Below, piece by piece: positions 21,563 through 63,600 of a stretch of DNA of 64,000 nt (positions are counted from its first letter, which is position 1; each line of letters starts with the position of its first letter). The notes beneath the pieces were generated by a model that was not told where the DNA came from, searched no databases, and saw nothing but the letters and a program-made list of their open reading frames with translations. The stretch covers positions 186,001-250,000 of the forward strand of contig CM074819.1 in the NCBI GenBank assembly GCA_037447605.1, given 5' to 3'. The translations under genes and the position numbers were made by a program. This stretch comes from Zygnema circumcarinatum SAG 698-1b. Its lineage: Eukaryota; Plantae; Zygnematophyceae.

Positions 21563-22640
21563 CTCCCTCACTTCTCTTTCCTTTCCCATCCCCACTCCTC
21601 CCCTCGCCTCCTCTCCCCTACCCTCTTTCGTCTCCTCCCACTCCTCTTCCCCCTCCCCGTCTCCCCTCCCCGTCTCCCCTTCTCGTCCCCTGCCCTCTTC
21701 TCTCACCCCCTTCCCTCCCATCCTTCTCCTCCCCCTCCCCTTCGCCCACCCCCGCCCCTCGTCTCCCCTCGTCTGCGTCAGGGGCCTGTGATCGCACTAA
21801 CCTTCATGAAGTTAAGCATCGAGACAAGCTTCACTGCTCCTTCTACCATAGTCTGCACCGATGGCTTTTCGGCCCTCTCTGACGCGGAGCTTCCCCCAGA
21901 AGCTTCATGCAGGTCTACCGTTTCGTCTCCTGATAACACAGCGGGAATGAAAGGGCTGCCATCACCGTATTTCTCTCTGCAAAATTTAGGCGGAAGTTAT
22001 GATCATTCTTTGCAATAAGAACACAGTTCAGTAAATCGTTTCTGGATGGCTAGAAAAACCATTAAAGATCTTAAACCATGCACTAAATCCAGAATATCGG
22101 CCTCGACGGTTTCACTTCACCAGTTCCAATTTTTTACATCTTCCACAACTCTAATATATATCTAAATTCATTTTGAAAATTATTTTCTAAATAATTATTT
22201 TGGAAAGTTTAATATTTCTGAACACTCGGCTTGCAACTGGTCCTGGACCCTAAAAGTCTATGAGGGCGCGCAGCTTCTCACCGCGGCTCATGGCTGCTAT
22301 CTCCATTGAAAGCCGAGGGAGTGGAGAGATCTAGTTGCACATACGCGGAGGAAGATCTTCGCTTCGCCTCTGCCATGGCAGCCATGGAAGTAGAATTGAC
22401 CCTTAAATATAGCGAATATGTAGCACACACAATGCTAGCCCCACAAATACTTATTAATCTTTGGAAGGGCGGAAAAAAGCGTTAGAGAGAGAGAGAGAGA
22501 GACGAAAGAGAGGGGAGAGAGAGAGAGGAGCGAGCGAGAGAGACGAAAGAGAGAGGAGAGAGAGAGAGGGCAGAGAGAGAGAGGAGAGAGAGAGGGAGAG
22601 GGAGAGAGAGAGAGAGGGGAGAGAGGGAGAGGGAGAGGGA
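21563..22640 (-). repeat. Near-identical second copy of 20473-21552 (HIP exons 1-2), probably an assembly overlap
   Basis: It begins immediately after a 10-N gap. The only difference noticed was a 3-bp intronic indel. Confidence 0.8.
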
Positions 22641-22680
22641 GAGGGAGAGGGAGAGAGAGGGAGAGAGGAGAGAGAGAGAG

Positions 22681-22752
<72 letters not shown>

Positions 22753-22774
22753 CGAGAGCGAGAGCGAGAGCGAG

Positions 22775-22830
<56 letters not shown>

Positions 22831-22839
22831 GGAGAGGGA

Positions 22840-22884
<45 letters not shown>

Positions 22885-23158
22885 CGAGAGCGAGAGCGAG
22901 AGAGAGAGAGCGAGAGGGAGAGGGAGAGGGAGAGGGAGAGGGAGAGGCAGGCTTGAAGTGTGTCATAAATATTTTAGGAGAGTCATTTACAGGACCGGCG
23001 GACATGCAAAGACGAAAGGGTGGGGGGTCCAGAAAAAGGACAGTTGAAGCCGACCGGACGCCCAGTTCGAGGCGGTTACGACCGGAGCGTGCAAGCGGCG
23101 GTGCGTACTCGGATTTTTAAGAAAGATGAAAGTGGAGCTAAAATAGCGGTCCATGTAA

Positions 23159-23301
23159 GGGTGCGTTTTCATGGTTCAACTTCGTCCATTTAGTTGGATG
23201 AAAAAGTTGGAAACCGCGGCGGAGAGTTCACATCAGCAACGTTGAACCACATTTGCATTCGTTCAACTAAATGGACGAAGTTGAACCATGAAAACGCACC
23301 C
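23159..23301. mobile_element. PIF/Harbinger (Tourist-like) MITE, 143 bp
   Basis: 38-bp perfect TIRs GGGTGCGTTTTCATGGTTCAACTTCGTCCATTTAGTTG, flanked by TAA and TTA. Confidence 0.8.
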
Positions 23302-24285
23302 TTAGTACTATAATTCAAACGTTACGACACGTAACGTCACATCATCTCTCACATAACGCATATGTCGACAATGTTTCTTCCGTGACGCTTAACAACTTTA
23401 CCAAAGGGACGAATATGGCACGTCTCGTGGAATGATGGTTTGGTACATACTCTATTCGTACATGCTCGAAAAAGTGAAGAGAGCGCTAGCACGTTTTGGA
23501 TGCCCACAGTGGAAGGGTAGGTGTGGGAAGATGATGAATAACGGGAGATAGGGCCTGTGATGGAAAGACGATAGAGGTGGATGGTTGAGATTCAGAAATG
23601 GAGTAAAAGCGGAGGTGGGACTATTAGACACATGAAGCCAACTGGTTGTATGATCGGAGTACTTAGTCAAGTACATTTGAAAATGACTTGAAAACTTGAA
23701 GAACTTTTATGCATGTTTAAGGAATGCCAATAACAGAACACCGTCCGAAACGTTTACATTTTCCAAAGGCGAAACCTTTATGCACATGGAACCTCCTAAG
23801 CGTGTCCCCCCTCCCTCTCCCCCTCCCTCCCTCCCTCCCTCCCCCTCCTCCCTCTCTCCCTCTCCCTCCCTCCCTCTCCCTCCCTCTCCCTCGCCCTTCC
23901 TCCGCTCTCCTTCTCTCCTCTCCCTCTCCCTCTCCCTCTCCTCTCCTCTCCTCTTCCTCTCCCTCTCCCTCTCCCTCCCTCCTCCCTCTCCCTCTCCCTC
24001 TCCCTCTCCCTCTCCCTCCCTCTTCCTTTCTCCCTCTCCTCCCTTCCTTCCCTTTTCCTCTTCCTTCTCTTCCTTCTTCTTTCTTCTTCTTCTTCTCTTT
24101 CTTCTTCTTTCTTTCCCTTCTTTCTTTCTTCTTCTTCCTTCTTTCCTTCTTCTTTCCTTCTTCTTCTTTTCCTTCTTCTCTCTTCTCTTCTTCTCTCTTC
24201 TTCCTTCTCTTCCCTTCTCTCCCTCCCTCTCCTCCCTCCCTCCCTCTCTCTCTCTCTCTCGTCTTTGCTGCATTACTGTTTTTCT

Positions 24286-50300: not shown

Positions 50301-51129
50301 CAAGCATCATTCTCTCAAGATAACTAGCACCTCTCATCTAAGAAACAGCTGATCACAGTTAAAACAAAGTATGTAACAGGCTGCAAAATAAGGCAAACGA
50401 ATTCGCAATTCGGGCAGCACAATGCGTTGGATTGCTGAGTTGGCCGACAAATGCATCTACATCCACATCCACGTCCCGCAGAGACGGGCAAGCAGGGGGA
50501 CGCACAGCAGCGGAGTCCGCGGTGGGCGCAGCGGCGGCGGAGGGCCTGCGCGGCGAGGCGGGGGCGGGGGCGGTGGCGGGGGCGGGGGCGGGCGCGGGGC
50601 GGCGGTCCTGGAGGGCGCGGAGCTGCTGCGCGGCGGCGGCGGAGGGGAAGAGGCGCAGCGCCTTGGCGAGGAGGCGCTCGGCCCGCGCGAGGCTGCCCGC
50701 CGCGGCGGCCTCCTCCGCGAGGCGCGCACACCGCTCCGCCTCATCGCGGTTGCCCTCCATGGCCATGGCCGCCCGCCCACCGCTCGCAGAGAGCCGAGCA
50801 GAGCAGAGCGCAAGGGACGAACACTCACTACACTACACAATGCACTACAGTACACTACAGTAGGGGTGGGAGAAGTTTAGGCTTGGAGGCACGGTACCGG
50901 CCTAATTCGTACCCCGGCCCACGTGCCCCCCCCACCGTGACGAGGGGCATGCCCGGGACACGTGCCCCTTTTCGTGCCCCGTGACGTGACAACATACAAC
51001 AGTTTTAGGGTAACTCTACTGCACCCCCGCGTTTTGTCTTTCGCACCCCCCTTTTGAAAGTTTTGCCTGCCCGTTTTGGTACCCCCCAGTTTTGAATATT
51101 TCGGGAAAAATTCTTTTTCCCGCCCCTCC
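47320..51129 (-). repeat. Two further copies of the 5' part of the J-protein gene (47320-49543 and 49554-51129), probably contig overlaps
   Basis: Each copy starts right after a 10-N gap. 47320 matches 45324 and 49554 matches ~45998. They are near-identical except for a noisy ~150 bp at 48590-48740. Confidence 0.8.
50878..50995 (+). mobile_element. Non-autonomous end related to the hAT at 28679 (also duplicated at ~49292)
   Basis: TAGGCTTGGAGGCACGG resembles the TIR TAGGGTTGGGGGCACGG. The interior ccttttcgtgccccgtgacgtgac is the reverse complement of ~32440-32463. Confidence 0.65.
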
Positions 51130-51289
51130 NNNNNNNNNNGCGCCTAGCTGGATGGTGTGCTGTCCCGTGGGCCGCCAACAAATGGCGCCGCCGTCTCGCA
51201 TTTTCCGTCGGCAATTCTTGGATCAGGCCGGTCCGTGACACTGAATATGAACATGTCAAGTACAACTGAACGGGCGCGGATCCGTCGCA

Positions 51290-51638
51290 CGTAGCTCCGT
51301 TACGCTACACTTACGCAAAACTCACCTACAGTAATCTCCCTGCACTTGCCGCCGTACGAGGCGCTCACTCTTCTCCCCTTGTTCTTGGATTCGATACGAT
51401 ACGATACGAAACGCCTCGACACGGTACTATCCGTACTATCGTTATTTGCCATATAACCAATACGGTACGATGCGGTACGATATGCCAACAAACGATACGA
51501 TACGGTACGTACGGACACACATGAACTCTAACATAATTCCGCTCGCCTATTGGTAACACAGACCTGATATTTGCCAAAAACAATATTTTCGCCGGATATT
51601 TGCTAAAACCAGGTGGAAAATATGATGGGGTCCTACTG
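51290..51638 (-). mobile_element. Partial inverted copy of the MITE at 51936-52378
   Basis: cttacgcaaaactcacc, cgatacgatacg repeats and the end ggtggaaaatatgatggggtcctactgta match the reverse complement of that family. Confidence 0.65.
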
Positions 51639-51935
51639 TATTGGCGCCTTAGAGATTAGAGATTTCATCCGTACTCACCGTACAGCGGAATAGCGTGATC
51701 CATGCTCGAAAGTCGTTTTCGATTAACAGATTTTGTATTGAAAAATAGATCAGGTTAGGTTAATACCCCTAAATACATTAACACTGACTAAAAAAAAAAA
51801 AAAAAAACCCACTGATTAAGTGCGGAGAAAAGTGGTTTCCTTCATGAACAATTCTCCAATCCTCCAATCAGGGCGAATTTCTTGGGTAACGAGAGTCCTC
51901 GGGTGAAAACTCTTACTGTAGAGTATCTTACTGTA

Positions 51936-52378
51936 CAGTCAGCAGTCCTCATATTTTCGCCATGGTTTTGGCAAATATGTGGCAAAAATCTTGATTTTGC
52001 AAATAGAAGGTTTGTGTTACCAATAGACGGGCAGTATTATGTTAGAGTTCATGTTGGACCGTGCGTATTGTACCGTACCATATCGTACAGTATCGTAATG
52101 TATCGTATCCTATCGTATCGTATCGAAGCTAAGAAGAAGGGGGGAGAAGAGCGAGCGCCTCTTATGGCGGCACGTGCGGGGAGATTAGGTGAGTTTTGCG
52201 TAAGCCCGTACCGGCTAGTACATCTAGTACGGATAGTACGGTTAGTACGGCTTGTACGAATAGTCCGGGTAGTACGGCTAACACAAAGTTACCGTACAAA
52301 AAGGTGGTTTCTGCAAAATCGGGGCAAATTTCTTGGGGACGCACAGTCCAGGGTGGAAAATATGAGGACTGCTGACTG
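51936..52378. mobile_element. Tc1/mariner-type MITE, 443 bp
   Basis: 23-bp TIRs CAGTCAGCAGTCCTCATATTTTC / GAAAATATGAGGACTGCTGACTG with a TA TSD on both sides. Related pieces occur at 6193-6212 and ~6310-6385. Confidence 0.85.
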
Positions 52379-52469
52379 TACTGTACTTAAAAAGTGCAAC
52401 CAAATGGTACCAACAGTACGGCCTGTTCGCCTCGACGTGGGAGTTCCTTGTGAGTCGTCATCGCACTGG

Positions 52470-52656
52470 CCGTGACGTGACGTGACGTGACGTACCGTAA
52501 TGCGCTGACGTAGGGGGCACAGTCGAAGGGGCACGGCTTTTCGTGCCCCGGCCACGGCCGATCGCATGCCCAGGCATGGGCCCCCACACGGGCATGCCCC
52601 CCACCCGGGCATGCCCCCCACCCGGGCATGCCCATGCCCCCGTGCCTCCAAACCTA
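52470..52656 (-). mobile_element. hAT-related right end with GGGCATGCCCC subterminal repeats
   Basis: It ends CCGTGCCTCCAAACCTA, a TIR variant of the 28679 family. Confidence 0.6.
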
Positions 52657-53795
52657 GCCCCGTGACGTGATAACATTTAGCAATTACAATCGGGACCGAT
52701 CGGGATTCAAATCGGCGACCTTCGGGTCTTCTTCTAGTGCCATGTTACTGAGCCTGGAAGATTTACCGTTAAAAGGCATCTTCTATTCGTCCGTACGTCC
52801 TTCGTTAACCGATTCCTTTGGTTGCCACAACTCTTCGCCTAATACCACATCTCTTCAACTTTGGTTCACTCCGTTGATTTTATCCAGGCACATTTGGTGG
52901 CCAACCCATCGTGAGATCCATGCAAAATCCCTTTTCATTTGTAAAACAAATGCACGAATAAGGGTGTGTTTTCATGTTCAAACGTTCATTGAAGTGAAAA
53001 AAGGCTGGCGTGGTTTAACCTTGCTATGCTGTCTCCCACTTTCTAACAGTTGAACGATTTGTGATGATGGACAATGAATTATTCGGGTCTCACCTTCATG
53101 CTCAAATAGAAAAATGGGGTGAACTAAAAATTGGAAAGATGACGCCGTCTTGCAGCGTTGCTGGCCTCCCTGTTAACACCGACCCCCTTAAAGCAGCTTT
53201 TCCGTATTCTTTTTTATGAAGCAAGCTTTGCACATGCTAGCTTTTCATGCACATCGTTTCAAACAGTGGCCTGGAGCATGCTACGCACGTGCTCATCTCC
53301 TTGTCAAATCGTTTCAATCTCCTGGCGGATTGTGCTGGCTTTCGTCCATCATTGGTGGGGCCTCAGAACGGGTCCAAGAAGCTAAATTCCGTGCCACACA
53401 CGACTATTCAAGACTGTTGTACGGCTATAGAGACCGTACAACTTATGGGACATAGTCTCTCTATGACATGAAGAACTTGGGCGCGGACGCCAAGCGACAA
53501 GGTTGGTCGCGCGGGCGCGGACGCAGGAAAGTTCTAAGTTAAGAAGTTCCGCAGGACGTGGCGGTGACGAACCGAACATTTGTTACGGGCGTCGACGGCG
53601 GCGGCCTTGGCGACGCTAAGGGCCTTGGAGGCGAGATGTGAAGGAGGGCGGCGTGACAAGTTGGCGGGGCCTTGGTCGGAGCCCCAGGCGGAAGCNNNNN
53701 NNNNNNNNNNNNNNNNNNNNNNNNNNNNNNNNNNNNNNNNNNNNNNNNNNNNNNNNNNNNNNNNNNNNNNNNNNNNNNNNNNNNNNNNNNNNNNN

Positions 53796-56700
53796 CTTTG
53801 TGAAACCCAACAGCAGCAGCCGCTCTTGCCCGCAAGCAGGCTCAGCAGGAGGCGCAGAGCCGGCCGGGAGCTATTCCGGGACTTCTGCCCGATGAGGTCA
53901 TATTGCCAGCTGTCGATGCTGTGGGTGAGGGAGCTGTGTCCTTAATCCACTTATCTTCGCTTTCCCTCTCGCTCTTCCCTTCTCCTTCTCTCTCTCTCTC
54001 CCTCTCCCTCTCCCGCTCCTTCTCCCTTCCCCTCTCTGCTTTTGGTAACCCTGTAACAACGAGAAATAAGGGATGTGTATTTCCTGGCCGGGCAGGAGTG
54101 AGCCTACTTCGTAAGATGGGGTGGCGACCTGGTCGCTCGGTGGGGCCCTCTCACGAAGTGGCGTCTAAAAGTGTTCGTAGAAAAGCGCGCAGAGCAATGT
54201 TGGCCCTTGCAGCGCCTCAAAGCACAGTTCCAGAAGCCGTGCAGAAGTTTCCTGGAGCTGAAAAAGCGCCGCAGAAAAAGATGTATGGTGCAGAACTTCC
54301 TCCAGAGTTCATGCAATCGCGGAAGGACATGGCGGAAGAAGAGAGTGGAAGGGAGAGACAGAGGGACGAGGAAGACGAAGAGGAGGGGGAGGAGGCGAAG
54401 GTTCCGTCCACGACGCCGGTCTACGTAGTTAAACCAAAGACTGATTTTTACGGCTTTGGATTCGATCCCTACAAGCAGGCCCCTGAATTTCGAGGTGGTT
54501 CTTTACCCAGGCTCAGGTGCCTTCTATCTAGTAACTGGTTAGTAGTTGATACGCACAGGGCTGACCCCTTTGATAAAGATCGTACCGTACTGCTGACTCT
54601 TGGAACGGGTCCTTTTCTATATGTCAACAGTCGATTAGGTAGTCCTGTTTTTACCAAGTAGCTTTTTTTAACAATTTCTAATTCGCAATGTCTCTTATGC
54701 TGTTACAGCTGCAAAGCAGAATGCCATACAATCTACTTCAGGTGGCTCGTCTCGCATTATAGGTTTGAGTACGGCAGGTAAAGGGGGCCTATTTAGACCA
54801 AGAGCAGGAACTATGGCAGGAGGATTTGGAATAGGAGCATTGGAAGAAGTCGGGGAAGAAGACGAAGATGTATATGCGCAAGGTGAGTACTTACCAACCC
54901 TATTCAATCAAGCATCCTTTCAGAGCGTGCAAACTCTAAAAACTCCAACATCACTCGACCCCTGCACTTGTCTACTTGCTTGGTTACTTTGATCCCTGCA
55001 GGTCCTTTGAGGAATAAATGAACTGAAGCTTGCCTTTCTTGGTTATGCTTATGACATTGCCCACTATGGAACTCGACGCAGACTTTGCAACTGAAGTAGT
55101 TTCATCGGATGAAGATGAGACTGAAAAAGAGCCCACAGGCAGGGGGGAGCCTACCACTTACTTCCCTTCCTCTATCCCAAAAGCGGAGATCGAGCGAGTG
55201 AAGGTGAACTCGTTGACAGGCTTCAAGCCAGGCTCTGTCGGTGGAGGTGAGATAAAGTGGTGAGTAGAAACATTTGGTTAACTTGATCTTGGGGTGCATT
55301 ACACCCCATTGCGAGAACAATTGATTAAAGGAAAAGAGAAAAAGATGAAAAAAAAATTACTATCGCCTGGTTGCAGGTATTCCCCTCCTGCAATTCCTCC
55401 TGATTTTGTCCCATTCCACCGATTTTCGTCCACTCGGAGCGAGTATGCAAGCTCCCTTACTGCTGTGATTCCCGACGCTGTTCCTCCCCCTACAGATCCC
55501 AACATTCGTACTGCAATTGAAGGATTAGCGGTTTTTGTAGCCCGCGGAGGGCAGCAATTTGAAGACATAGTGAGAGAGAAGCAAATGGGTAACTCTACAT
55601 TCAGTTTCTTATTCGGAGGGCCTGGAATGGAGTACTACACTCGGAGGCTTTGGGAGGTTCGACAGAAGCGGAGAGAGGAGGAGGGAGAGTGTGTGAGGGG
55701 AGGAGGAGAGAAGACAGGAGAGGGTAAATGTGGGAAGGAGGAGAGATTGGATGCTGAGCAGAGGGGAAGGCTTTTAGGGGAGAGGGCTCTTCCAAGAACT
55801 GAAGAGCCTATCACATCTCTTATTGCTCCAGAAGATAGACAGAGGCTTATGTCAGCCCTGGCTGGGCAGTTTGAGAGAGGAGTTCAGCAGGTTGGGAAGC
55901 AGAACCTTAACACCTTATAGTCTTCAATTGCCTGCATTGTGTTGAGTCTGGTTCCTTAAGTCCTAACGGAGTTTTTTGAACGAACGAAGTTCCTTAGAAC
56001 AAAGGTTTTTTGACGTTTTGCATGCAGGATATGGATGCTCATGCAGACATGCAGCCCTTCAAAGGAGACCTTGCAAAGCAGAAGCGCTTTGAAGAGTATG
56101 TTCGAGAGAAGGTTTCTGGGGGCCTCCGGATGCCTTCGTTGGGGAGTGCCGATACCCTCAGTCCCTCCGAGAGAGCCTCAGAAATAGCAGAATTTGAGAG
56201 AGCAGCCTCTATGGCGGTTCGAGCCCAGCCGACGAAAGCTGAGGGAGGAGTGGGAGGAAGCCAGGGCCGCTCAGAGCTTGCAGCCATGATGGAGTGCCGT
56301 TTCACTTCAGGCGGAGCAGAAGCCACAAAACTTCCGGTATGCTCTCTCTCCTCCTCTCCTTCCCTCTTGCTCTCAGTGGAAAGACTGATCCTCATGTTTA
56401 TCCTGAATGAATATCTTAAAAAACCAATAAGGCCCACATTCAGATCATGCAGTGCACAAACCGTGATTGTGCTGCCTGTTGTTTTGCATGAGGCTAGGCC
56501 GAATTGAAAGTCATTTTTTCCTTTCTTTCAACTGCATGCTGCAATGGATATGCTTTCACGAGTTTAACTGAATCTGCACACACTCTGTCTCTCTCTCGCT
56601 CTCGCTCTCGCTCTCTCACTCTACACTCTCACTTCTCTCCCTCTCAATCTGTTGCTCCAGGCAGGATTGGCATCTGTTGAAGACCTCCAAGTGCAGTCTC

Positions 56701-58354
56701 TATTCTCAGTTCCCTTGTCCGCTAAGAAGTTTCCATATAGAGAAATAGAACCATGGAGGCCTGTACCTCTTCTTTGCAAGCGGTACAATGTACCTGACCC
56801 TTTTGCTGGCAAGGTATTCATTCCATCGAAAACATTCGATGAATCCCTGAATGTAATACATTTTTTTATGCTACTGTACGAGTTCCAGTGTTCCTGTATT
56901 GCTGTTCCTTTCCTTCATCAATAAAGTCAATTTCAGTTTAACGAAGGGCAGCCTCTCGTCTGCAGGCTCCATCCCCTCCCAAGCCTCGCAGCAGGGTGGA
57001 CTCCCTCACTCTCACTCTCACTATGCCTCTTTCTGAAGTCTCTCCTACAAGAAGAGGTAGTGAGTCTGTTCCAACTTTGATGGCGCCCCCATTCGTTCCG
57101 GCAGAAGTTCAGAAATCATCTCCAGGATCAGAGAAAGAGGAGCGGAAAAGAGCAGGAGAGGGTGAATTAGGAGAGGCGAAAGTGGAGCTTATTCAGGACA
57201 AGCCTATCGACCTGTTCAAGGTGTGGCTCTATACAGAAATTATAAACTTTCTTAAGAATAACTTAATTCTTGTCTTGCCTTTCTTCTTTCTCTCTCTCTC
57301 TCTCTCCGCCTCCCCCCCTCGCTCTTTCAGCTCTTTCTTTTTTTCCGCTCTTTTTTTCTTTTAAGTTTGTCTATCTCCTCCCCTACTTGCAGGCAATTTT
57401 CTCGGATGAGGAATCTGGGGAGGAAGAAGATGAGGGTATGGAAGGAACTGGAAGCTTGAAGGAGGTAGAGAAAGAAAAAAGTAAAGCAGCAGAAGCTGCA
57501 AAAGCTGCTTTGAACCGGCTTGAAGCCAGTGACTTTTTGGAGTCCCTGGGAAGCGAACTGGGCCTTGAATTACCTCCCGCCCCGGCTGTTGATGTTCAGA
57601 CACAGGTTGATACTGCGATGAGGAAAGAGAGAGAGAGGGAGAAGAGAGAGAGATGGGAATCTAGGCCTCCCTCTGGCTCTTTCAAAGGAACTGAAGGGGT
57701 AAATTCTGGCAGTGTTGTCAGAGCAGAGGATACAGGAGAGGGTAGGAGAGCAGAGAGTGAGCGTGAGAGAGAGAAGCATGTTGGAGACAATGGAGCAGGT
57801 CCAGAAGGAGCTCCTTCTGGACATAGAAGAGACGATGGAGGGAGGGAGGATGCATTGGTAAAAGCCCCTTCTAGAGAGAGGCTTCATTCTGTGGGAGAAG
57901 GTGATGTGAAGGTGACAGAGCGTAATACAGACCTTCGTGAGGAGAGGGAGAGTGATAAAGGCGAGTTGTCGAGCACAGATGAGAGTTCGGATGAGAGAAG
58001 ACGGAGAAAGAAGATGAGGAAGGAGGAGAAGAGAGCACGGAAGGAAGAGCGAAGGGAGAGGAAACGACAAAAGGAAAAAGACAGCGATAGTCGGCGTGGA
58101 AAACGGAGAAAGGAGGAGGTAAGAAGAGAGTTGACAGGCCTTGGGAACCATTCGATGCTTGTTGGGCCACGGGAAAAATCAGTGAGGGTCATTGTGATTA
58201 AACCTTTTTTCTCTGTTCAATATAGACTTGAAGAGTTGACCAAAAAAGTTCTTGTGTTGGATATTATATCTCTCTTTATGGGTTGCTGGGGTCTTTATTT
58301 TGTTGGCTTTCGTTCTTTCAGGAGCGGCAAAAGCACAAGAGGAAGTGGTCGTAA
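53796..58354 (+). CDS. TGH: TOUGH / GPATCH1-type G-patch + SURP protein; the 5' exons lie in or before the 100-N gap
   Basis: Segments read RKQAQQEAQSRPGAIPGLLPDEVILPAVDAV-GVSLLRKMGWRPGRSVG (G-patch), VYVVKPKTDFYGFGFDPY, GGFGIGALEEVGEEDEDVY, SURP (IRTAIEGLAVFVARGGQQFEDIVREKQMGNSTFSFLFGG..YYTRRLWE), WRPVPLLCKRYNVPDPF, DKPIDLFKAIFSD and a K/R-rich tail. The last exon is 58322-58354. Confidence 0.92.
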
Positions 58355-58894
58355 CATGAAGACGGAGGCCTGCCAAATAGCACAAATGAAAGAAATTTGG
58401 GGAATAAAACGAGTTAAACTTGCGTGATTACGCTTACATAGCAAAAATCTTTTTTCTAGGAGTCAAACCTAAACCATGAATTGGAACAAAAATGTATGAC
58501 TTGTGTCAATGATCATTACAGCACCTTGTTCTTAAATGATTGACTGACTGCTTGACTAGTTTTCCATTATAAATGAACAAGCCTGCGATTTGTTTGATGC
58601 TAGCCTTTTTTTATTCCCCAGATTTTTTTTCATCTGTGCTATTTGGCAAGCCTGCATCTTCATGTTACGATCTCTTCCTTTTGTCCTTTTGTCGCTCCTA
58701 AAGGAACGAAAGCCAACGAAGTAAAGTACCCCATCAGCCCATAAAGTGAGATATACTACTCTTCGGGTCTATATTGAACAGAGAAAAAAGGTTTAATCAA
58801 TCACAATGACCCACACTGACTTTTCCCGTGGCCCAACAAGCATCGAATGGTTCCCAAGGCCTGCTCAGCTCTCTTCTTACCTCTTCCTTCCTCC
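58104..58894. repeat. Long inverted repeat at the TGH 3' end (arms 58104-58409 and ~58609-58894)
   Basis: Arm 2 is the reverse complement of arm 1 at about 85-90% identity by eye, with one ~30-bp indel. Confidence 0.92.
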
Positions 58895-59957
58895 GCATTT
58901 AAGCTTACGTGGCTCCGCTTAGGTCCCTTTCCTAATGCTGTCAGCAAAAACCTAATCTCGTCTCCAGGAGCCAAACCCAAACCATGAACTTTTGCTAGAA
59001 CAAAACTATATGACTTGTGTCAATGACCATTGCGGCACCTTGTACTTAAATGATTGAGGCCTGCCAAGAGGAAGACTACTTTTCTATCATAAATGAAAGA
59101 GCGTGCGATTTGTTTGATGCTAGCAAGGCCGATCAGTATGGAGCTTCAGCACACGCATAAGGGTGCATCATTTCAGGACAATCGCGAACCTCAGTGACAC
59201 TATCGAACTTTACTAACATTGTCGCCTGGTACACGACTAACCCCATATTGTTGCAAATTAATCTGTCAAAGGTCAATCTCCGCACCCCGACCTTTCCTCT
59301 TAATACGCTGCCAGTCCCAAAGTGACCTTTCCCCGTCAACACTGCACTTACCGAGCTAAGAAGTGGGGACCGACGTTCCAAACCCTCCTAGACCTAACAA
59401 CATAGCCAACCAACAGTCACTCCGATACATCAAGCATACACACCAGGCACAGTCTTCAAATATTGTTTATTACGAGGATAAACTTCTCTAAATATAAAAA
59501 CCGAAACTTGCCGAACTTCTCCACCCTTTGGTTTTCCCAATCACCTCTACTTGGCCGTCTTAACCTCCTGATTAGCAACTCCCTAGTCGATAGCACTAGT
59601 AAAGCTATAGTGAGTGGGAGAGGCAAAAGGAAGGCTGAAGCGTAGAAAGGGAGGGGAAGGGAACGACAAACGGGGAGGGGGAGCGATAGATGTCTGAGGA
59701 CGACGACGAGGGTGAGGCAGCAGGCAAAGGTCATGGAAAGCATGGAGAGGAAAGGGCACCAGGAGAAGGGTGTGAGGGGAGGAGAGATAAAGGGTACAAG
59801 AGCGAGGAAATGAGGAAAAGGAGAAATATTACAAGGGGCTGGAGTGAGAGAGAAGGGGGGGCGGGGGGGTGGGGAAGGAGGGAGAGAGAAAAAGGGGTGG
59901 AAGAGAGAGATCGGGAAAGGAAGGGAGAGAGAGGGAGAGAGAAAAAATAGAGAGTGA

Positions 59958-63600
<3,643 letters not shown>

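Follow-up and report, generated by a model that had tools for sequence, protein, structure and literature searches.

A fold-back repeat at the 3′ end of a TOUGH gene of Zygnema circumcarinatum, probably the product of one old rearrangement

In a 64,000-nucleotide stretch of the Zygnema circumcarinatum SAG 698-1b genome (contig CM074819.1 of GCA_037447605.1; hereafter the window, numbered from its first letter), the 3′ end of a TOUGH (TGH) gene is followed by an inverted copy of itself and then by a direct copy of the sequence between the two, which gives the order A-X-A′-X′. We favour, with moderate confidence, the view that this locus between TGH and its neighbor Ku70 is a fixed and old complex rearrangement that arose in one event, drifted afterwards and has no selected regulatory role.

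Judged by its sequence, the gene is a TGH orthologue, with a probable G-patch before a SURP domain and best full-length relatives that carry DUF1604 and SURP and, in part, a G-patch. The Pfam Surp match (E 2.3e-14) lies in ORF 55294-55920, 3′ of a G-patch-like ORF at 53903-54661, and a SURP/SWAP domain downstream of a G-patch is the plant-type domain order (PMC7154892). The second half of the G-patch alone was matched, at 20 bits (E 6e-4) and so below the cutoff of 22, its first half being expected in or near a gap of 100 Ns at 53696-53795. The same gap is the expected site of DUF1604, for which a motif search and three-frame reading of 50500-54200 gave no match. Protein searches were run exon by exon, and the best full-length relatives starting at the N-terminus are P0005 (Mesotaenium), then P0009, P0013, P0015 and P0016; all of these have DUF1604 and Surp, while the G-patch is listed in three of the five and exceeds the Pfam cutoff in P0005 only. 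The translated penultimate exon aligned with residues 595-849 of the relative P0001 (E 6e-31) and with P0009 (E 1e-15) by local BLASTP without composition correction, another protein comparison of this low-complexity C-terminal exon having given no alignment. The basic C-terminus encoded by the last exon is similar to that of P0001. The identification as a TGH-type gene made in an earlier note, which was written from the DNA letters and their open reading frames, agrees with both the domain order and the best relatives.

RNA contigs at depths of 41-124 show that TGH is well expressed, and its splicing is correct. The penultimate exon (57391..58118, plus strand) is joined to the preceding one at 57218>57391 (GT..AG) in three RNA runs, with a contig end at 58119. 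The last intron (58119..58321, plus strand; 203 nt, GT..AG) appears as a 203-nt joint in RNA contigs of runs X6 and X11. Sequence and spliced RNA contigs then place a last coding exon of 10 codons and a TAA stop (58352-58354) at 58322..58354 on the plus strand. The 3′UTR (58355..58604, plus strand) is carried by an X11 contig at 58320-58597 and an X6 contig at 58320-58766, and a motif scan found poly(A)-signal-like motifs in it at 58403-58408 (AATAAA) and 58568-58577 (TATAAA/AATGAA).

Repeat search and gapped alignment place arm A, the original copy, at 58104..58414 (plus strand, 311 bases). It comprises the end of the penultimate exon, the entire last intron, the 33-nt last coding exon with its stop, and 60 nt of 3′UTR; sequence and RNA contigs agree with the earlier description of this content. 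Unit X (58415..58604, plus strand; repeat search) is the distal 3′UTR and forms the loop of the fold-back. Arm A′ (58605..58895, minus strand), found by the same two methods and with DNA contigs across both of its junctions, is A inverted, and X′ (58899..59124, plus strand; repeat search) is a direct copy of X with unique sequence beyond it. The gapped alignment of A with A′ has 29 mismatches in 285 aligned bases, or 89.8% identity (86% when gap columns are counted); relative to A, A′ has one 26-bp deletion, one 4-bp insertion and three single-base insertions, with 33 gap columns in total. On the minus strand A′ retains the copied GT, AG and stop codon. The repeat search divides the arms into collinear pairs at 58104-58134/58865-58895 (90%), 58135-58199/58799-58863 (97%), 58195-58236/58758-58799 (95%), 58262-58292/58728-58758 (87%) and 58288-58409/58610-58731 (82%). 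The direct repeat is found at 58446-58604/58954-59124 (83–90% by blocks, 83% across 159 bases), and a weaker likeness reaches leftward to 58415/58899, for an overall identity of 81–83%; X′ has an insertion of ~18–20 nt close to its left end. Each of the 18-mers and 30-mers diagnostic for X or A has just two occurrences in the window, where 0 would be expected by chance. The A′/X′ region also contains a spurious ORF (59 aa, 58801-58980, minus strand), a product with no counterpart on record. The repeat itself is thereby confirmed in all the details claimed for it: an inverted repeat of the TGH end at 85–90% identity around a loop of ~200 nt was reproduced in coordinates, identity and a 200-nt spacer, the loop was found to be directly repeated, and the claimed ~11 exonic mismatches, ~5 of them G:U on the sense transcript, were counted as 11 in 58322-58409 with 5 G:U on plus-strand RNA.

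Such a pattern could in principle be an assembly artefact, or a MITE- or Pack-type transposon with a captured gene fragment, and it is true that the assembly is scaffolded with many 10-N gaps and that, 6 kb upstream, there is a fold-back-like element whose terminal inverted repeats are long. The surroundings of the repeat, however, are gap-free for 3 kb, the nearest N runs being the one at 53696-53795 and another at 62259-62268, and the arms have diverged by 10%. The stretch is contained in 20 runs from 8 studies. In a DNA run of a separate study, one contig (58198-58796, depth 43.7) carries inner A, X and inner A′, and a second (58834-59589, depth 44.9) carries outer A′, X′ and downstream sequence, so that every junction is crossed at the single-copy depth of the flanking gene contig (43.5); these short-read contigs are interrupted only at the 97%-identical core of the arms. 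Both duplicates derive from directly adjoining unique sequence. The earlier argument against a misassembly, made from the distance to any N gap and the divergence of the arms, is thus strengthened by independent DNA contigs. A transposon or repeat family was ruled out, as each unit has two copies only within the 64-kb window, lies at single-copy depth and is free of flanking terminal repeats or a short target-site duplication. The artefact or transposon reading is already largely refuted, and we give it next to no probability. A retrocopy was also considered for A′, whose breakpoint lies 6 nt past AATAAA with a run of seven A in the copy there, and was ruled out by the retained intron, the start within an exon, the inverted orientation and the 190-bp flanking duplication.

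The homology of A′ ends at A 58413-58414 and X′ starts at X 58414-58415. Both duplicates, the inverted one of A and the direct one of X, thus start from one and the same A|X boundary, and from this we infer a single event. From the starting order A-X-downstream, one accident of repair or replication would have generated A-X-inverted A-X′-downstream, whether through breakage where A meets X, at about 58414, or through a double template switch, after which the copies would have drifted to their 10–17% divergence. Microhomology at the junctions is at most 1–2 nt and is unreliable after divergence of this extent. Outside the near-identical core of the arms, divergence is 13.8% for A/A′ (27/195) and 17% for X/X′ (27/159), values that are similar, on small counts. 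That the repeat stayed undeleted through this divergence is permitted, but not predicted, by neutrality. Products of template switching or MMBIR, such as human DUP-TRP/INV-DUP, combine an inverted duplication with an adjoining direct duplication. The TGH locus resembles them in having an inverted copy between direct copies, common breakpoints and several junctions from one event; it differs in its size (0.3 and 0.2 kb here, tens to hundreds of kb there) and in having no pre-existing inverted repeat that mediated the event.

The core of the arms (58134..58223, plus strand, with its partner at about 58771-58865) is intronic and has 2 mismatches in 90 bases, as compared with 27 in 195 elsewhere in the arms (Fisher p = 0.0014). 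We interpret it as a putative gene-conversion tract, inter-arm conversion having probably held this ~90-bp intron portion near-identical. Divergence is highest in the exon and UTR portion, where the longest perfect run is 14 nt, and any 21-mer from A′ therefore has at least 2 mismatches to the mRNA. Selection for mRNA targeting would be expected to conserve the exon and UTR best and the intron least, and the aligned arms show the opposite. Of 20 transitions, 14 are G:U-compatible on the sense RNA versus 6 that are not, an excess that is not significant (p = 0.115). This preservation of sense-RNA pairing counts against a neutral origin; as a sign of selection for pairing it was rejected, on the same p value and for being inseparable from a plus-strand C>T mutation bias. 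The protein closest to TGH among 1.84 billion representatives matches it at just 56% identity across the SURP region, which puts an alignable orthologous 3′ region out of reach; the inverted repeat is absent from the mRNA contig of the closest relative (L001, 320-nt 3′UTR), a result of little weight.

The position of the TGH 3′ end decides whether both arms can enter one RNA. Runs X6, X11 and X20 were seen as assembled contigs, which give no true 3′ ends, strand or level and in which a coverage hole proves nothing. The X11 3′UTR contig (58320-58597) ends 8 nt short of A′, with the TATAAA/AATGAA motif 20–30 nt before this point, and depth falls to 0 across 58664-58789. X20, the cleanest mRNA run with introns nearly empty, has nothing at 58160-59293. 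RNA contigs are thus absent over inner A′ in two of the three runs, and by these contigs the usual TGH mRNA ends before A′, at about 58597–58604. The X6 contig leaves the spliced last exon, crosses X without a break and ends inside A′, at 58766, and this presence of part of A′ in RNA counts against a neutral origin; the background of X6 is such that introns are as deep as Ku70 exons (Ku70 intron 12.4, exons 12.8–19). The earlier note had named beforehand a poly(A) end upstream of ~58600, combined with arms free of small-RNA and degradome signal, as evidence against a processed hairpin; for the first half of this, X11, which stops at 58597, and the empty X20 place the end there, while X6 does not. 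With A′ probably past the main 3′ end, the mature mRNA would have one arm only and be unfolded. A 290-bp hairpin could then form only in minority read-through transcripts or in nascent RNA before cleavage.

Folding predictions follow this division. The region 58095-58905 folds at −485.5 kcal/mol (z = −37.8) and a spliced read-through RNA at −160.8 kcal/mol (z −15), and the predicted hairpins of ~290 bp and ~93 bp are close to the ~290 bp before and ~90 bp after splicing that had been proposed. For the mature-like 3′ end (58322-58600), predicted folding does not exceed that of its shuffles (z +1.4), and the intron alone has a z of −0.6, so that the transcript as normally made contains no stable hairpin of the DGCR8 type in either part. 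A miRNA-like hairpin within the intron, comparable to miR838 of DCL1, was rejected since the intron behaves like shuffles on both strands (z −0.6 and +1.2). An Rfam scan with E up to 1 returned nothing on the arms or intron and two sub-threshold matches upstream (57058-57315), and a discrete known MIR family on the arms was rejected for want of a match at that threshold. Nothing points to the proposed masking of the last 3′ splice site by the fold-back, since the last intron is removed efficiently, as seen in its spliced form in X6 and X11.

If TGH read-through did occur, an A/A′ duplex could be diced, and small RNAs or the dicing itself would lower TGH output in a feedback loop, as the earlier note suggested. 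We consider this self-targeting unlikely, and the regulatory reading of the repeat, including the Dicer-substrate idea, to be unproven rather than refuted. The great predicted stability of the folds speaks for it, as do the X6 contig that passes from the spliced last exon into A′ and the 14 of 20 G:U-compatible transitions. The role of TGH in small-RNA biogenesis, however, is documented for Arabidopsis and not for this alga. Two of three RNA runs are without an A′ contig and the third has an intron-level or DNA-like background; the exon and UTR part of the arms is the most diverged, with conservation best in the intron; the G:U excess has p = 0.115; and cleavage at the poly(A) site would part the arms. 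Hairpin autoregulation is known from the DGCR8 mRNA, which is cut by Microprocessor, and from DCL1 with miR162 and the intronic miR838. TGH is like these in being a small-RNA biogenesis gene physically joined to a hairpin open to processing by its own pathway. Their hairpins are short, conserved and inside the mature or primary transcript, whereas that of TGH is 290 bp long, needs read-through and has no local miRNA-like counterpart in the intron.

Precedents from plants also favor self-targeting in part. Long inverted repeats in plants, if transcribed at all, commonly give siRNAs, and Pol II transcription of endogenous inverted repeats is an acknowledged origin of siRNAs (PMC10827316). The TGH repeat is like these endoIR-siRNA loci in being a ~290-bp, ~90%-paired inverted repeat with a short spacer in Pol II-transcribed surroundings; such loci are defined by abundant 21–24-nt siRNAs and a transcript through both arms, and here two of the three RNA runs show no contig of such a transcript. 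In the classical account of how plant miRNA genes are born, target-gene sequence becomes duplicated in inverted orientation (Allen et al. 2004, as cited in PMC10827316), a model later updated (PMC3237417) and discussed for young MIR genes (PMC2582634). In agreement with this model, a gene segment has been copied in inverted orientation to give a long imperfect fold-back that matches its protein-coding parent and whose arms decay. In contrast to it, arm A is the 3′ end of TGH itself, in place, rather than part of a separate two-arm locus, A′ lies past the observed mRNA end, and the part matching the mRNA is the most decayed.

The locus could also be a cis silencing trigger of a class that recurs at convergent 3′ ends, in which failed termination would lead to a read-through fold-back and then to siRNAs that lower TGH output; we regard this as quite improbable. 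Maize Mu killer, rice LGC1 and Arabidopsis PAI1-PAI4 are natural silencing inverted duplications driven by read-through. In those systems a partial inverted duplicate of a gene is read from a neighboring promoter into hairpin RNA that silences the parent, an arrangement that the TGH repeat resembles; but there hairpin transcripts, siRNAs and silencing have all been demonstrated, while TGH, as noted, is well expressed and correctly spliced.

The neighbor on the other side is Ku70, identified by Pfam matches to SAP and Ku (both E 5e-9). Its last exon, with the SAP domain and a stop at 59958-59960, and its 3′UTR occupy 59332..60071 on the minus strand (Pfam; RNA contig 59332-59900), and the joint 60071>60414 (CT..AC) is present in three RNA runs. 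TGH (plus) and Ku70 (minus) are thus tail-to-tail, their stops (58354 and 59958) being 1.6 kb apart. Double-stranded RNA formed between them might then come mostly from overlap of the two transcripts as a cis-natural-antisense pair, the inverted repeat being incidental. Nat-siRNAs of convergent genes are a recognised class (PMC10827316), and low-level X6 and X11 contigs extend from the Ku70 3′UTR across X′ into the outer end of A′, to 58834–58859. Those contigs carry no strand, though, and are just as shallow as the intron background; X20, the cleanest run, has its Ku70 contig ending at 59332 and its TGH side at or before 58600, leaving ~700 nt bare. An antisense pair is accordingly a doubtful explanation, to which we assign little probability.

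The location between two 3′ ends might instead point to a role of the repeat as DNA or chromatin, with a cruciform-prone or methylated element terminating or insulating both convergent units. The inner edge of the repeat coincides with the TGH RNA contig end, and each of the two breakpoints (58414 and 58604) follows a poly(A)-signal-like motif at a distance of between a few and ~27 nt. The coincidence with 3′ ends is equally explained by how the rearrangement arose; we believe a role of this kind to be very improbable.

If the hairpin were processed, it would place a small-RNA pathway gene outside land plants under an unusual kind of feedback, and would show an early stage of the inverted-duplication route to new regulatory RNAs. 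On present evidence the locus is mainly a clean and datable small complex rearrangement, in which an inverted and a direct duplication have one common breakpoint. Both of its breakpoints adjoin poly(A)-signal-like motifs at a place where two convergent genes meet. Perhaps the more useful question is whether rearrangements of this kind arise with particular frequency at convergent 3′ ends in this genome, and whether the resulting fold-backs give rise to small RNAs.

The 3' end of the TOUGH-like gene (TGH, + strand) carries both an inverted and a direct repeat, and repeat search together with gapped alignment bore out the A-X-A'-X' layout described in the earlier note. Arm A (58104-58414, + strand) recurs inverted as A' (58605-58895) in five collinear blocks of 82-97% identity, while X (58415-58604), which lies between the arms, recurs directly as X' (58899-59124) in three blocks of 83-90%. 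Aligned with gaps, A differs from the reverse complement of A' at 29 of 285 positions (89.8% identity), with a 26-bp deletion, a 4-bp insertion and three single-base insertions in A' (33 gap columns in total); X and X' are 81-83% identical. The spacer between the arms measures 200 nt, as had been claimed for the loop, and the 88 exonic bp contain the predicted 11 mismatches, five of them G:U on the sense RNA. At 22569-24061, arrays of low-complexity units yielded many spurious inverted-repeat calls.

The proposal that the structure is no misassembly was upheld, as the nearest N runs (53696-53795 and 62259-62268) are kilobases away and independent DNA contigs support it. Eight studies of the same organism contributed 20 public runs that contain the stretch, and four runs were mapped as contigs onto 56900-60650: one DNA run (X4), from a study other than that of the likely source sample, and three RNA runs (X6, X11 and X20). 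The X4 contigs cover 56900-58164, 58198-58796 (inner A, X and inner A') and 58834-59589 (outer A', X' and unique downstream sequence) at depths of 43.5, 43.7 and 44.9. Depth does not differ from that of the flanking gene, which makes each arm single-copy. Contig breaks are confined to the core where the arms are 97% identical, the behavior expected of a k-mer assembler at a true inverted repeat. Contigs at flank depth that break only in this core largely rule out an assembly artefact. A repeat family is rejected on the single-copy depth and on the diagnostic words of A and X, each of which has two occurrences and no more in the window of 64 kb, against a chance expectation of 0.

The identity of the gene as TOUGH is supported by domain order, by the architecture of its relatives and by alignment of its penultimate exon to the related proteins P0001 (E 6e-31) and P0009 (E 1e-15). 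TOUGH combines DUF1604, G-patch and SWAP/SURP (PMC7154892), and here a weak G-patch-like segment (20 bits) lies 5' of a clear SURP module (E 2.3e-14). A search with the SURP exon among 1.84 billion representatives gave P0001, a partial RNA contig, as best match at 56% identity. The five full-length relatives whose sequence begins at the N-terminus, one Mesotaenium protein among them, all have DUF1604 and SURP, with a G-patch match listed for three. No DUF1604 was found in the window, where a 100-N gap (53696-53795), falling within the 5' part of TGH, occupies its expected place and probably hides the DUF1604 exon(s) along with the first G-patch half; given this gap, any annotated gene model is likely truncated. 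Upstream of TGH lies a ~900-bp element (51300-52210) resembling a fold-back or MITE-like transposon: its terminal inverted repeats of ~200 bp include short ATACG-like tandem units, and ~20 consecutive A occur internally.

The downstream neighbor on the - strand is Ku70 (59958-62823; Ku barrel E 5e-9, C-terminal SAP E 5e-9, stop 59958-59960), making the two genes convergent, with A' and X' in the 1.6 kb between their stop codons. Its 3'UTR spans at least 626 nt, to 59332. A 118-nt DNA contig at 59560-59677 reaches depth 108 against a local ~44, probably representing a short dispersed repeat in this 3'UTR; four clustered base differences (59621-59626) are common to X4, X6 and X11 and absent from X20. 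A long CT/GA microsatellite lies at 61128-61800.

We recognized X6, X11 and X20 as RNA by their contigs, which skip a TGH intron (57219-57390) and the last Ku70 intron (60072-60413) at canonical sites. Contigs of X6 and X11 also splice out the last TGH intron (58119-58321, 203 nt), confirming a 33-nt last coding exon with its stop at 58352-58354; contigs at this intron are mostly spliced. Its retention would leave the frame open to 58427, swapping a 10-residue basic C-terminus for ~100 unrelated residues.

The X11 contig over the 3'UTR extends from 58320 to 58597, and this run has no depth at all across 58664-58789. Of the mRNA libraries, X20 is the cleanest (Ku70 intron depth 3.4 vs exons 45.6, TGH intron depth zero); its TGH contig (depth 113) stops at 58119, the edge of the exon, its Ku70 3'UTR contig ends at 59332, and no X20 contig lies anywhere in 58160-59293. 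One X6 contig runs from the spliced junction via the 3'UTR and X into A', to 58766, and from there switches to the other strand of arm A via 33 shared bases, a switch that we read as the assembler's path through the repeat. Introns in X6 are covered about as deeply as Ku70 exons (12.4 vs 12.8-19), so this run includes a good deal of unspliced RNA or DNA. Some 20-30 nt 5' of 58597 there is a TATAAA/AATGAA motif, and a canonical AATAAA is at 58403. Contig ends are no proof of 3' ends and coverage holes prove nothing; most simply read, the contigs place the end of most TGH mRNA at ~58600 or earlier, leaving 5-8 nt to A'.

The earlier note had suggested that read-through transcripts form a hairpin that feeds back on TGH as a Dicer substrate. 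The folding itself is supported in silico: 58095-58905 reaches -485.5 kcal/mol (z = -37.8), and the spliced 3' end (58322-58600) plus 100 nt of A' forms a 93-bp duplex (-160.8 kcal/mol, z -15). Ending at 58600, the mature-like form is no more stable than shuffled sequence (z +1.4), the last intron folded alone gives no local hairpin, and no Rfam family was matched at threshold in 56900-60700. Transitions make up 20 of the 29 mismatches, 14 keeping G:U pairing on + RNA and six on - RNA; this excess is not significant (binomial p = 0.115) and would arise equally if the non-template strand had a C>T bias. Within the intron's 5' half, 58134-58223 has 2 mismatches in 90 positions vs 27 in 195 elsewhere (Fisher p = 0.0014). 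The arm part matching mature mRNA is the most diverged; no more than 14 nt match there without interruption, so every 21-mer derived from A' would mismatch the mRNA at two or more positions. Such uneven identity would result from gene conversion between inverted-repeat arms and is not what selection for mRNA targeting would give. Hairpin autoregulation of TGH is unproven, with the available RNA evidence and the divergence pattern weighing against it, and we consider read-through-dependent self-silencing of this small-RNA pathway gene very improbable.

Among known concepts, the TGH locus comes closest to the inverted-duplication model by which new plant MIRNA genes arise (PMC3237417, PMC2582634) and to two siRNA classes, endoIR-siRNA and nat-siRNA (PMC10827316). 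It has the architecture of the inverted-duplication model, whose defining products would be small RNAs and a two-armed transcript; contigs of such a transcript were not seen in X11 or X20. The closest TGH relative within reach has 56% protein identity. Its mRNA (L001, a Logan contig of SRR8128905; 56% identity in the SURP region) encodes a similarly basic C-terminus (…RHKHRKKAE), and in this one relative the 320-nt 3'UTR holds no inverted repeat.

Homology of A' to A stops at A coordinate 58413-58414 and that of X' to X starts at 58414-58415, so the A|X boundary would be one ancestral point used by both duplications. A single event would suffice to give the arrangement A-X-invA-X-downstream: a break at this boundary would be repaired with a copy of the right flank followed by an inverted copy of the left flank; two template switches during replication would be an equivalent route. 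We infer one event since two independent ones would need coincident breakpoints. Divergence outside the converted core is similar for A/A' (13.8%) and X/X' (17%). The AATAAA ends 6 nt before the A|X boundary (58403-58414), and an AATGAA lies 27 nt before the X|A' junction (58568-58604), with the RNA contig end at 58597 nearly at that breakpoint. Both outer breakpoints thus fall shortly 3' of poly(A)-signal-like motifs, which may, speculatively, hint at trouble where transcription ends. Taken together, the locus is best explained, with reasonable though far from complete confidence, as an old, fixed inverted-plus-direct duplication that arose in a single event beyond the TGH poly(A) site.
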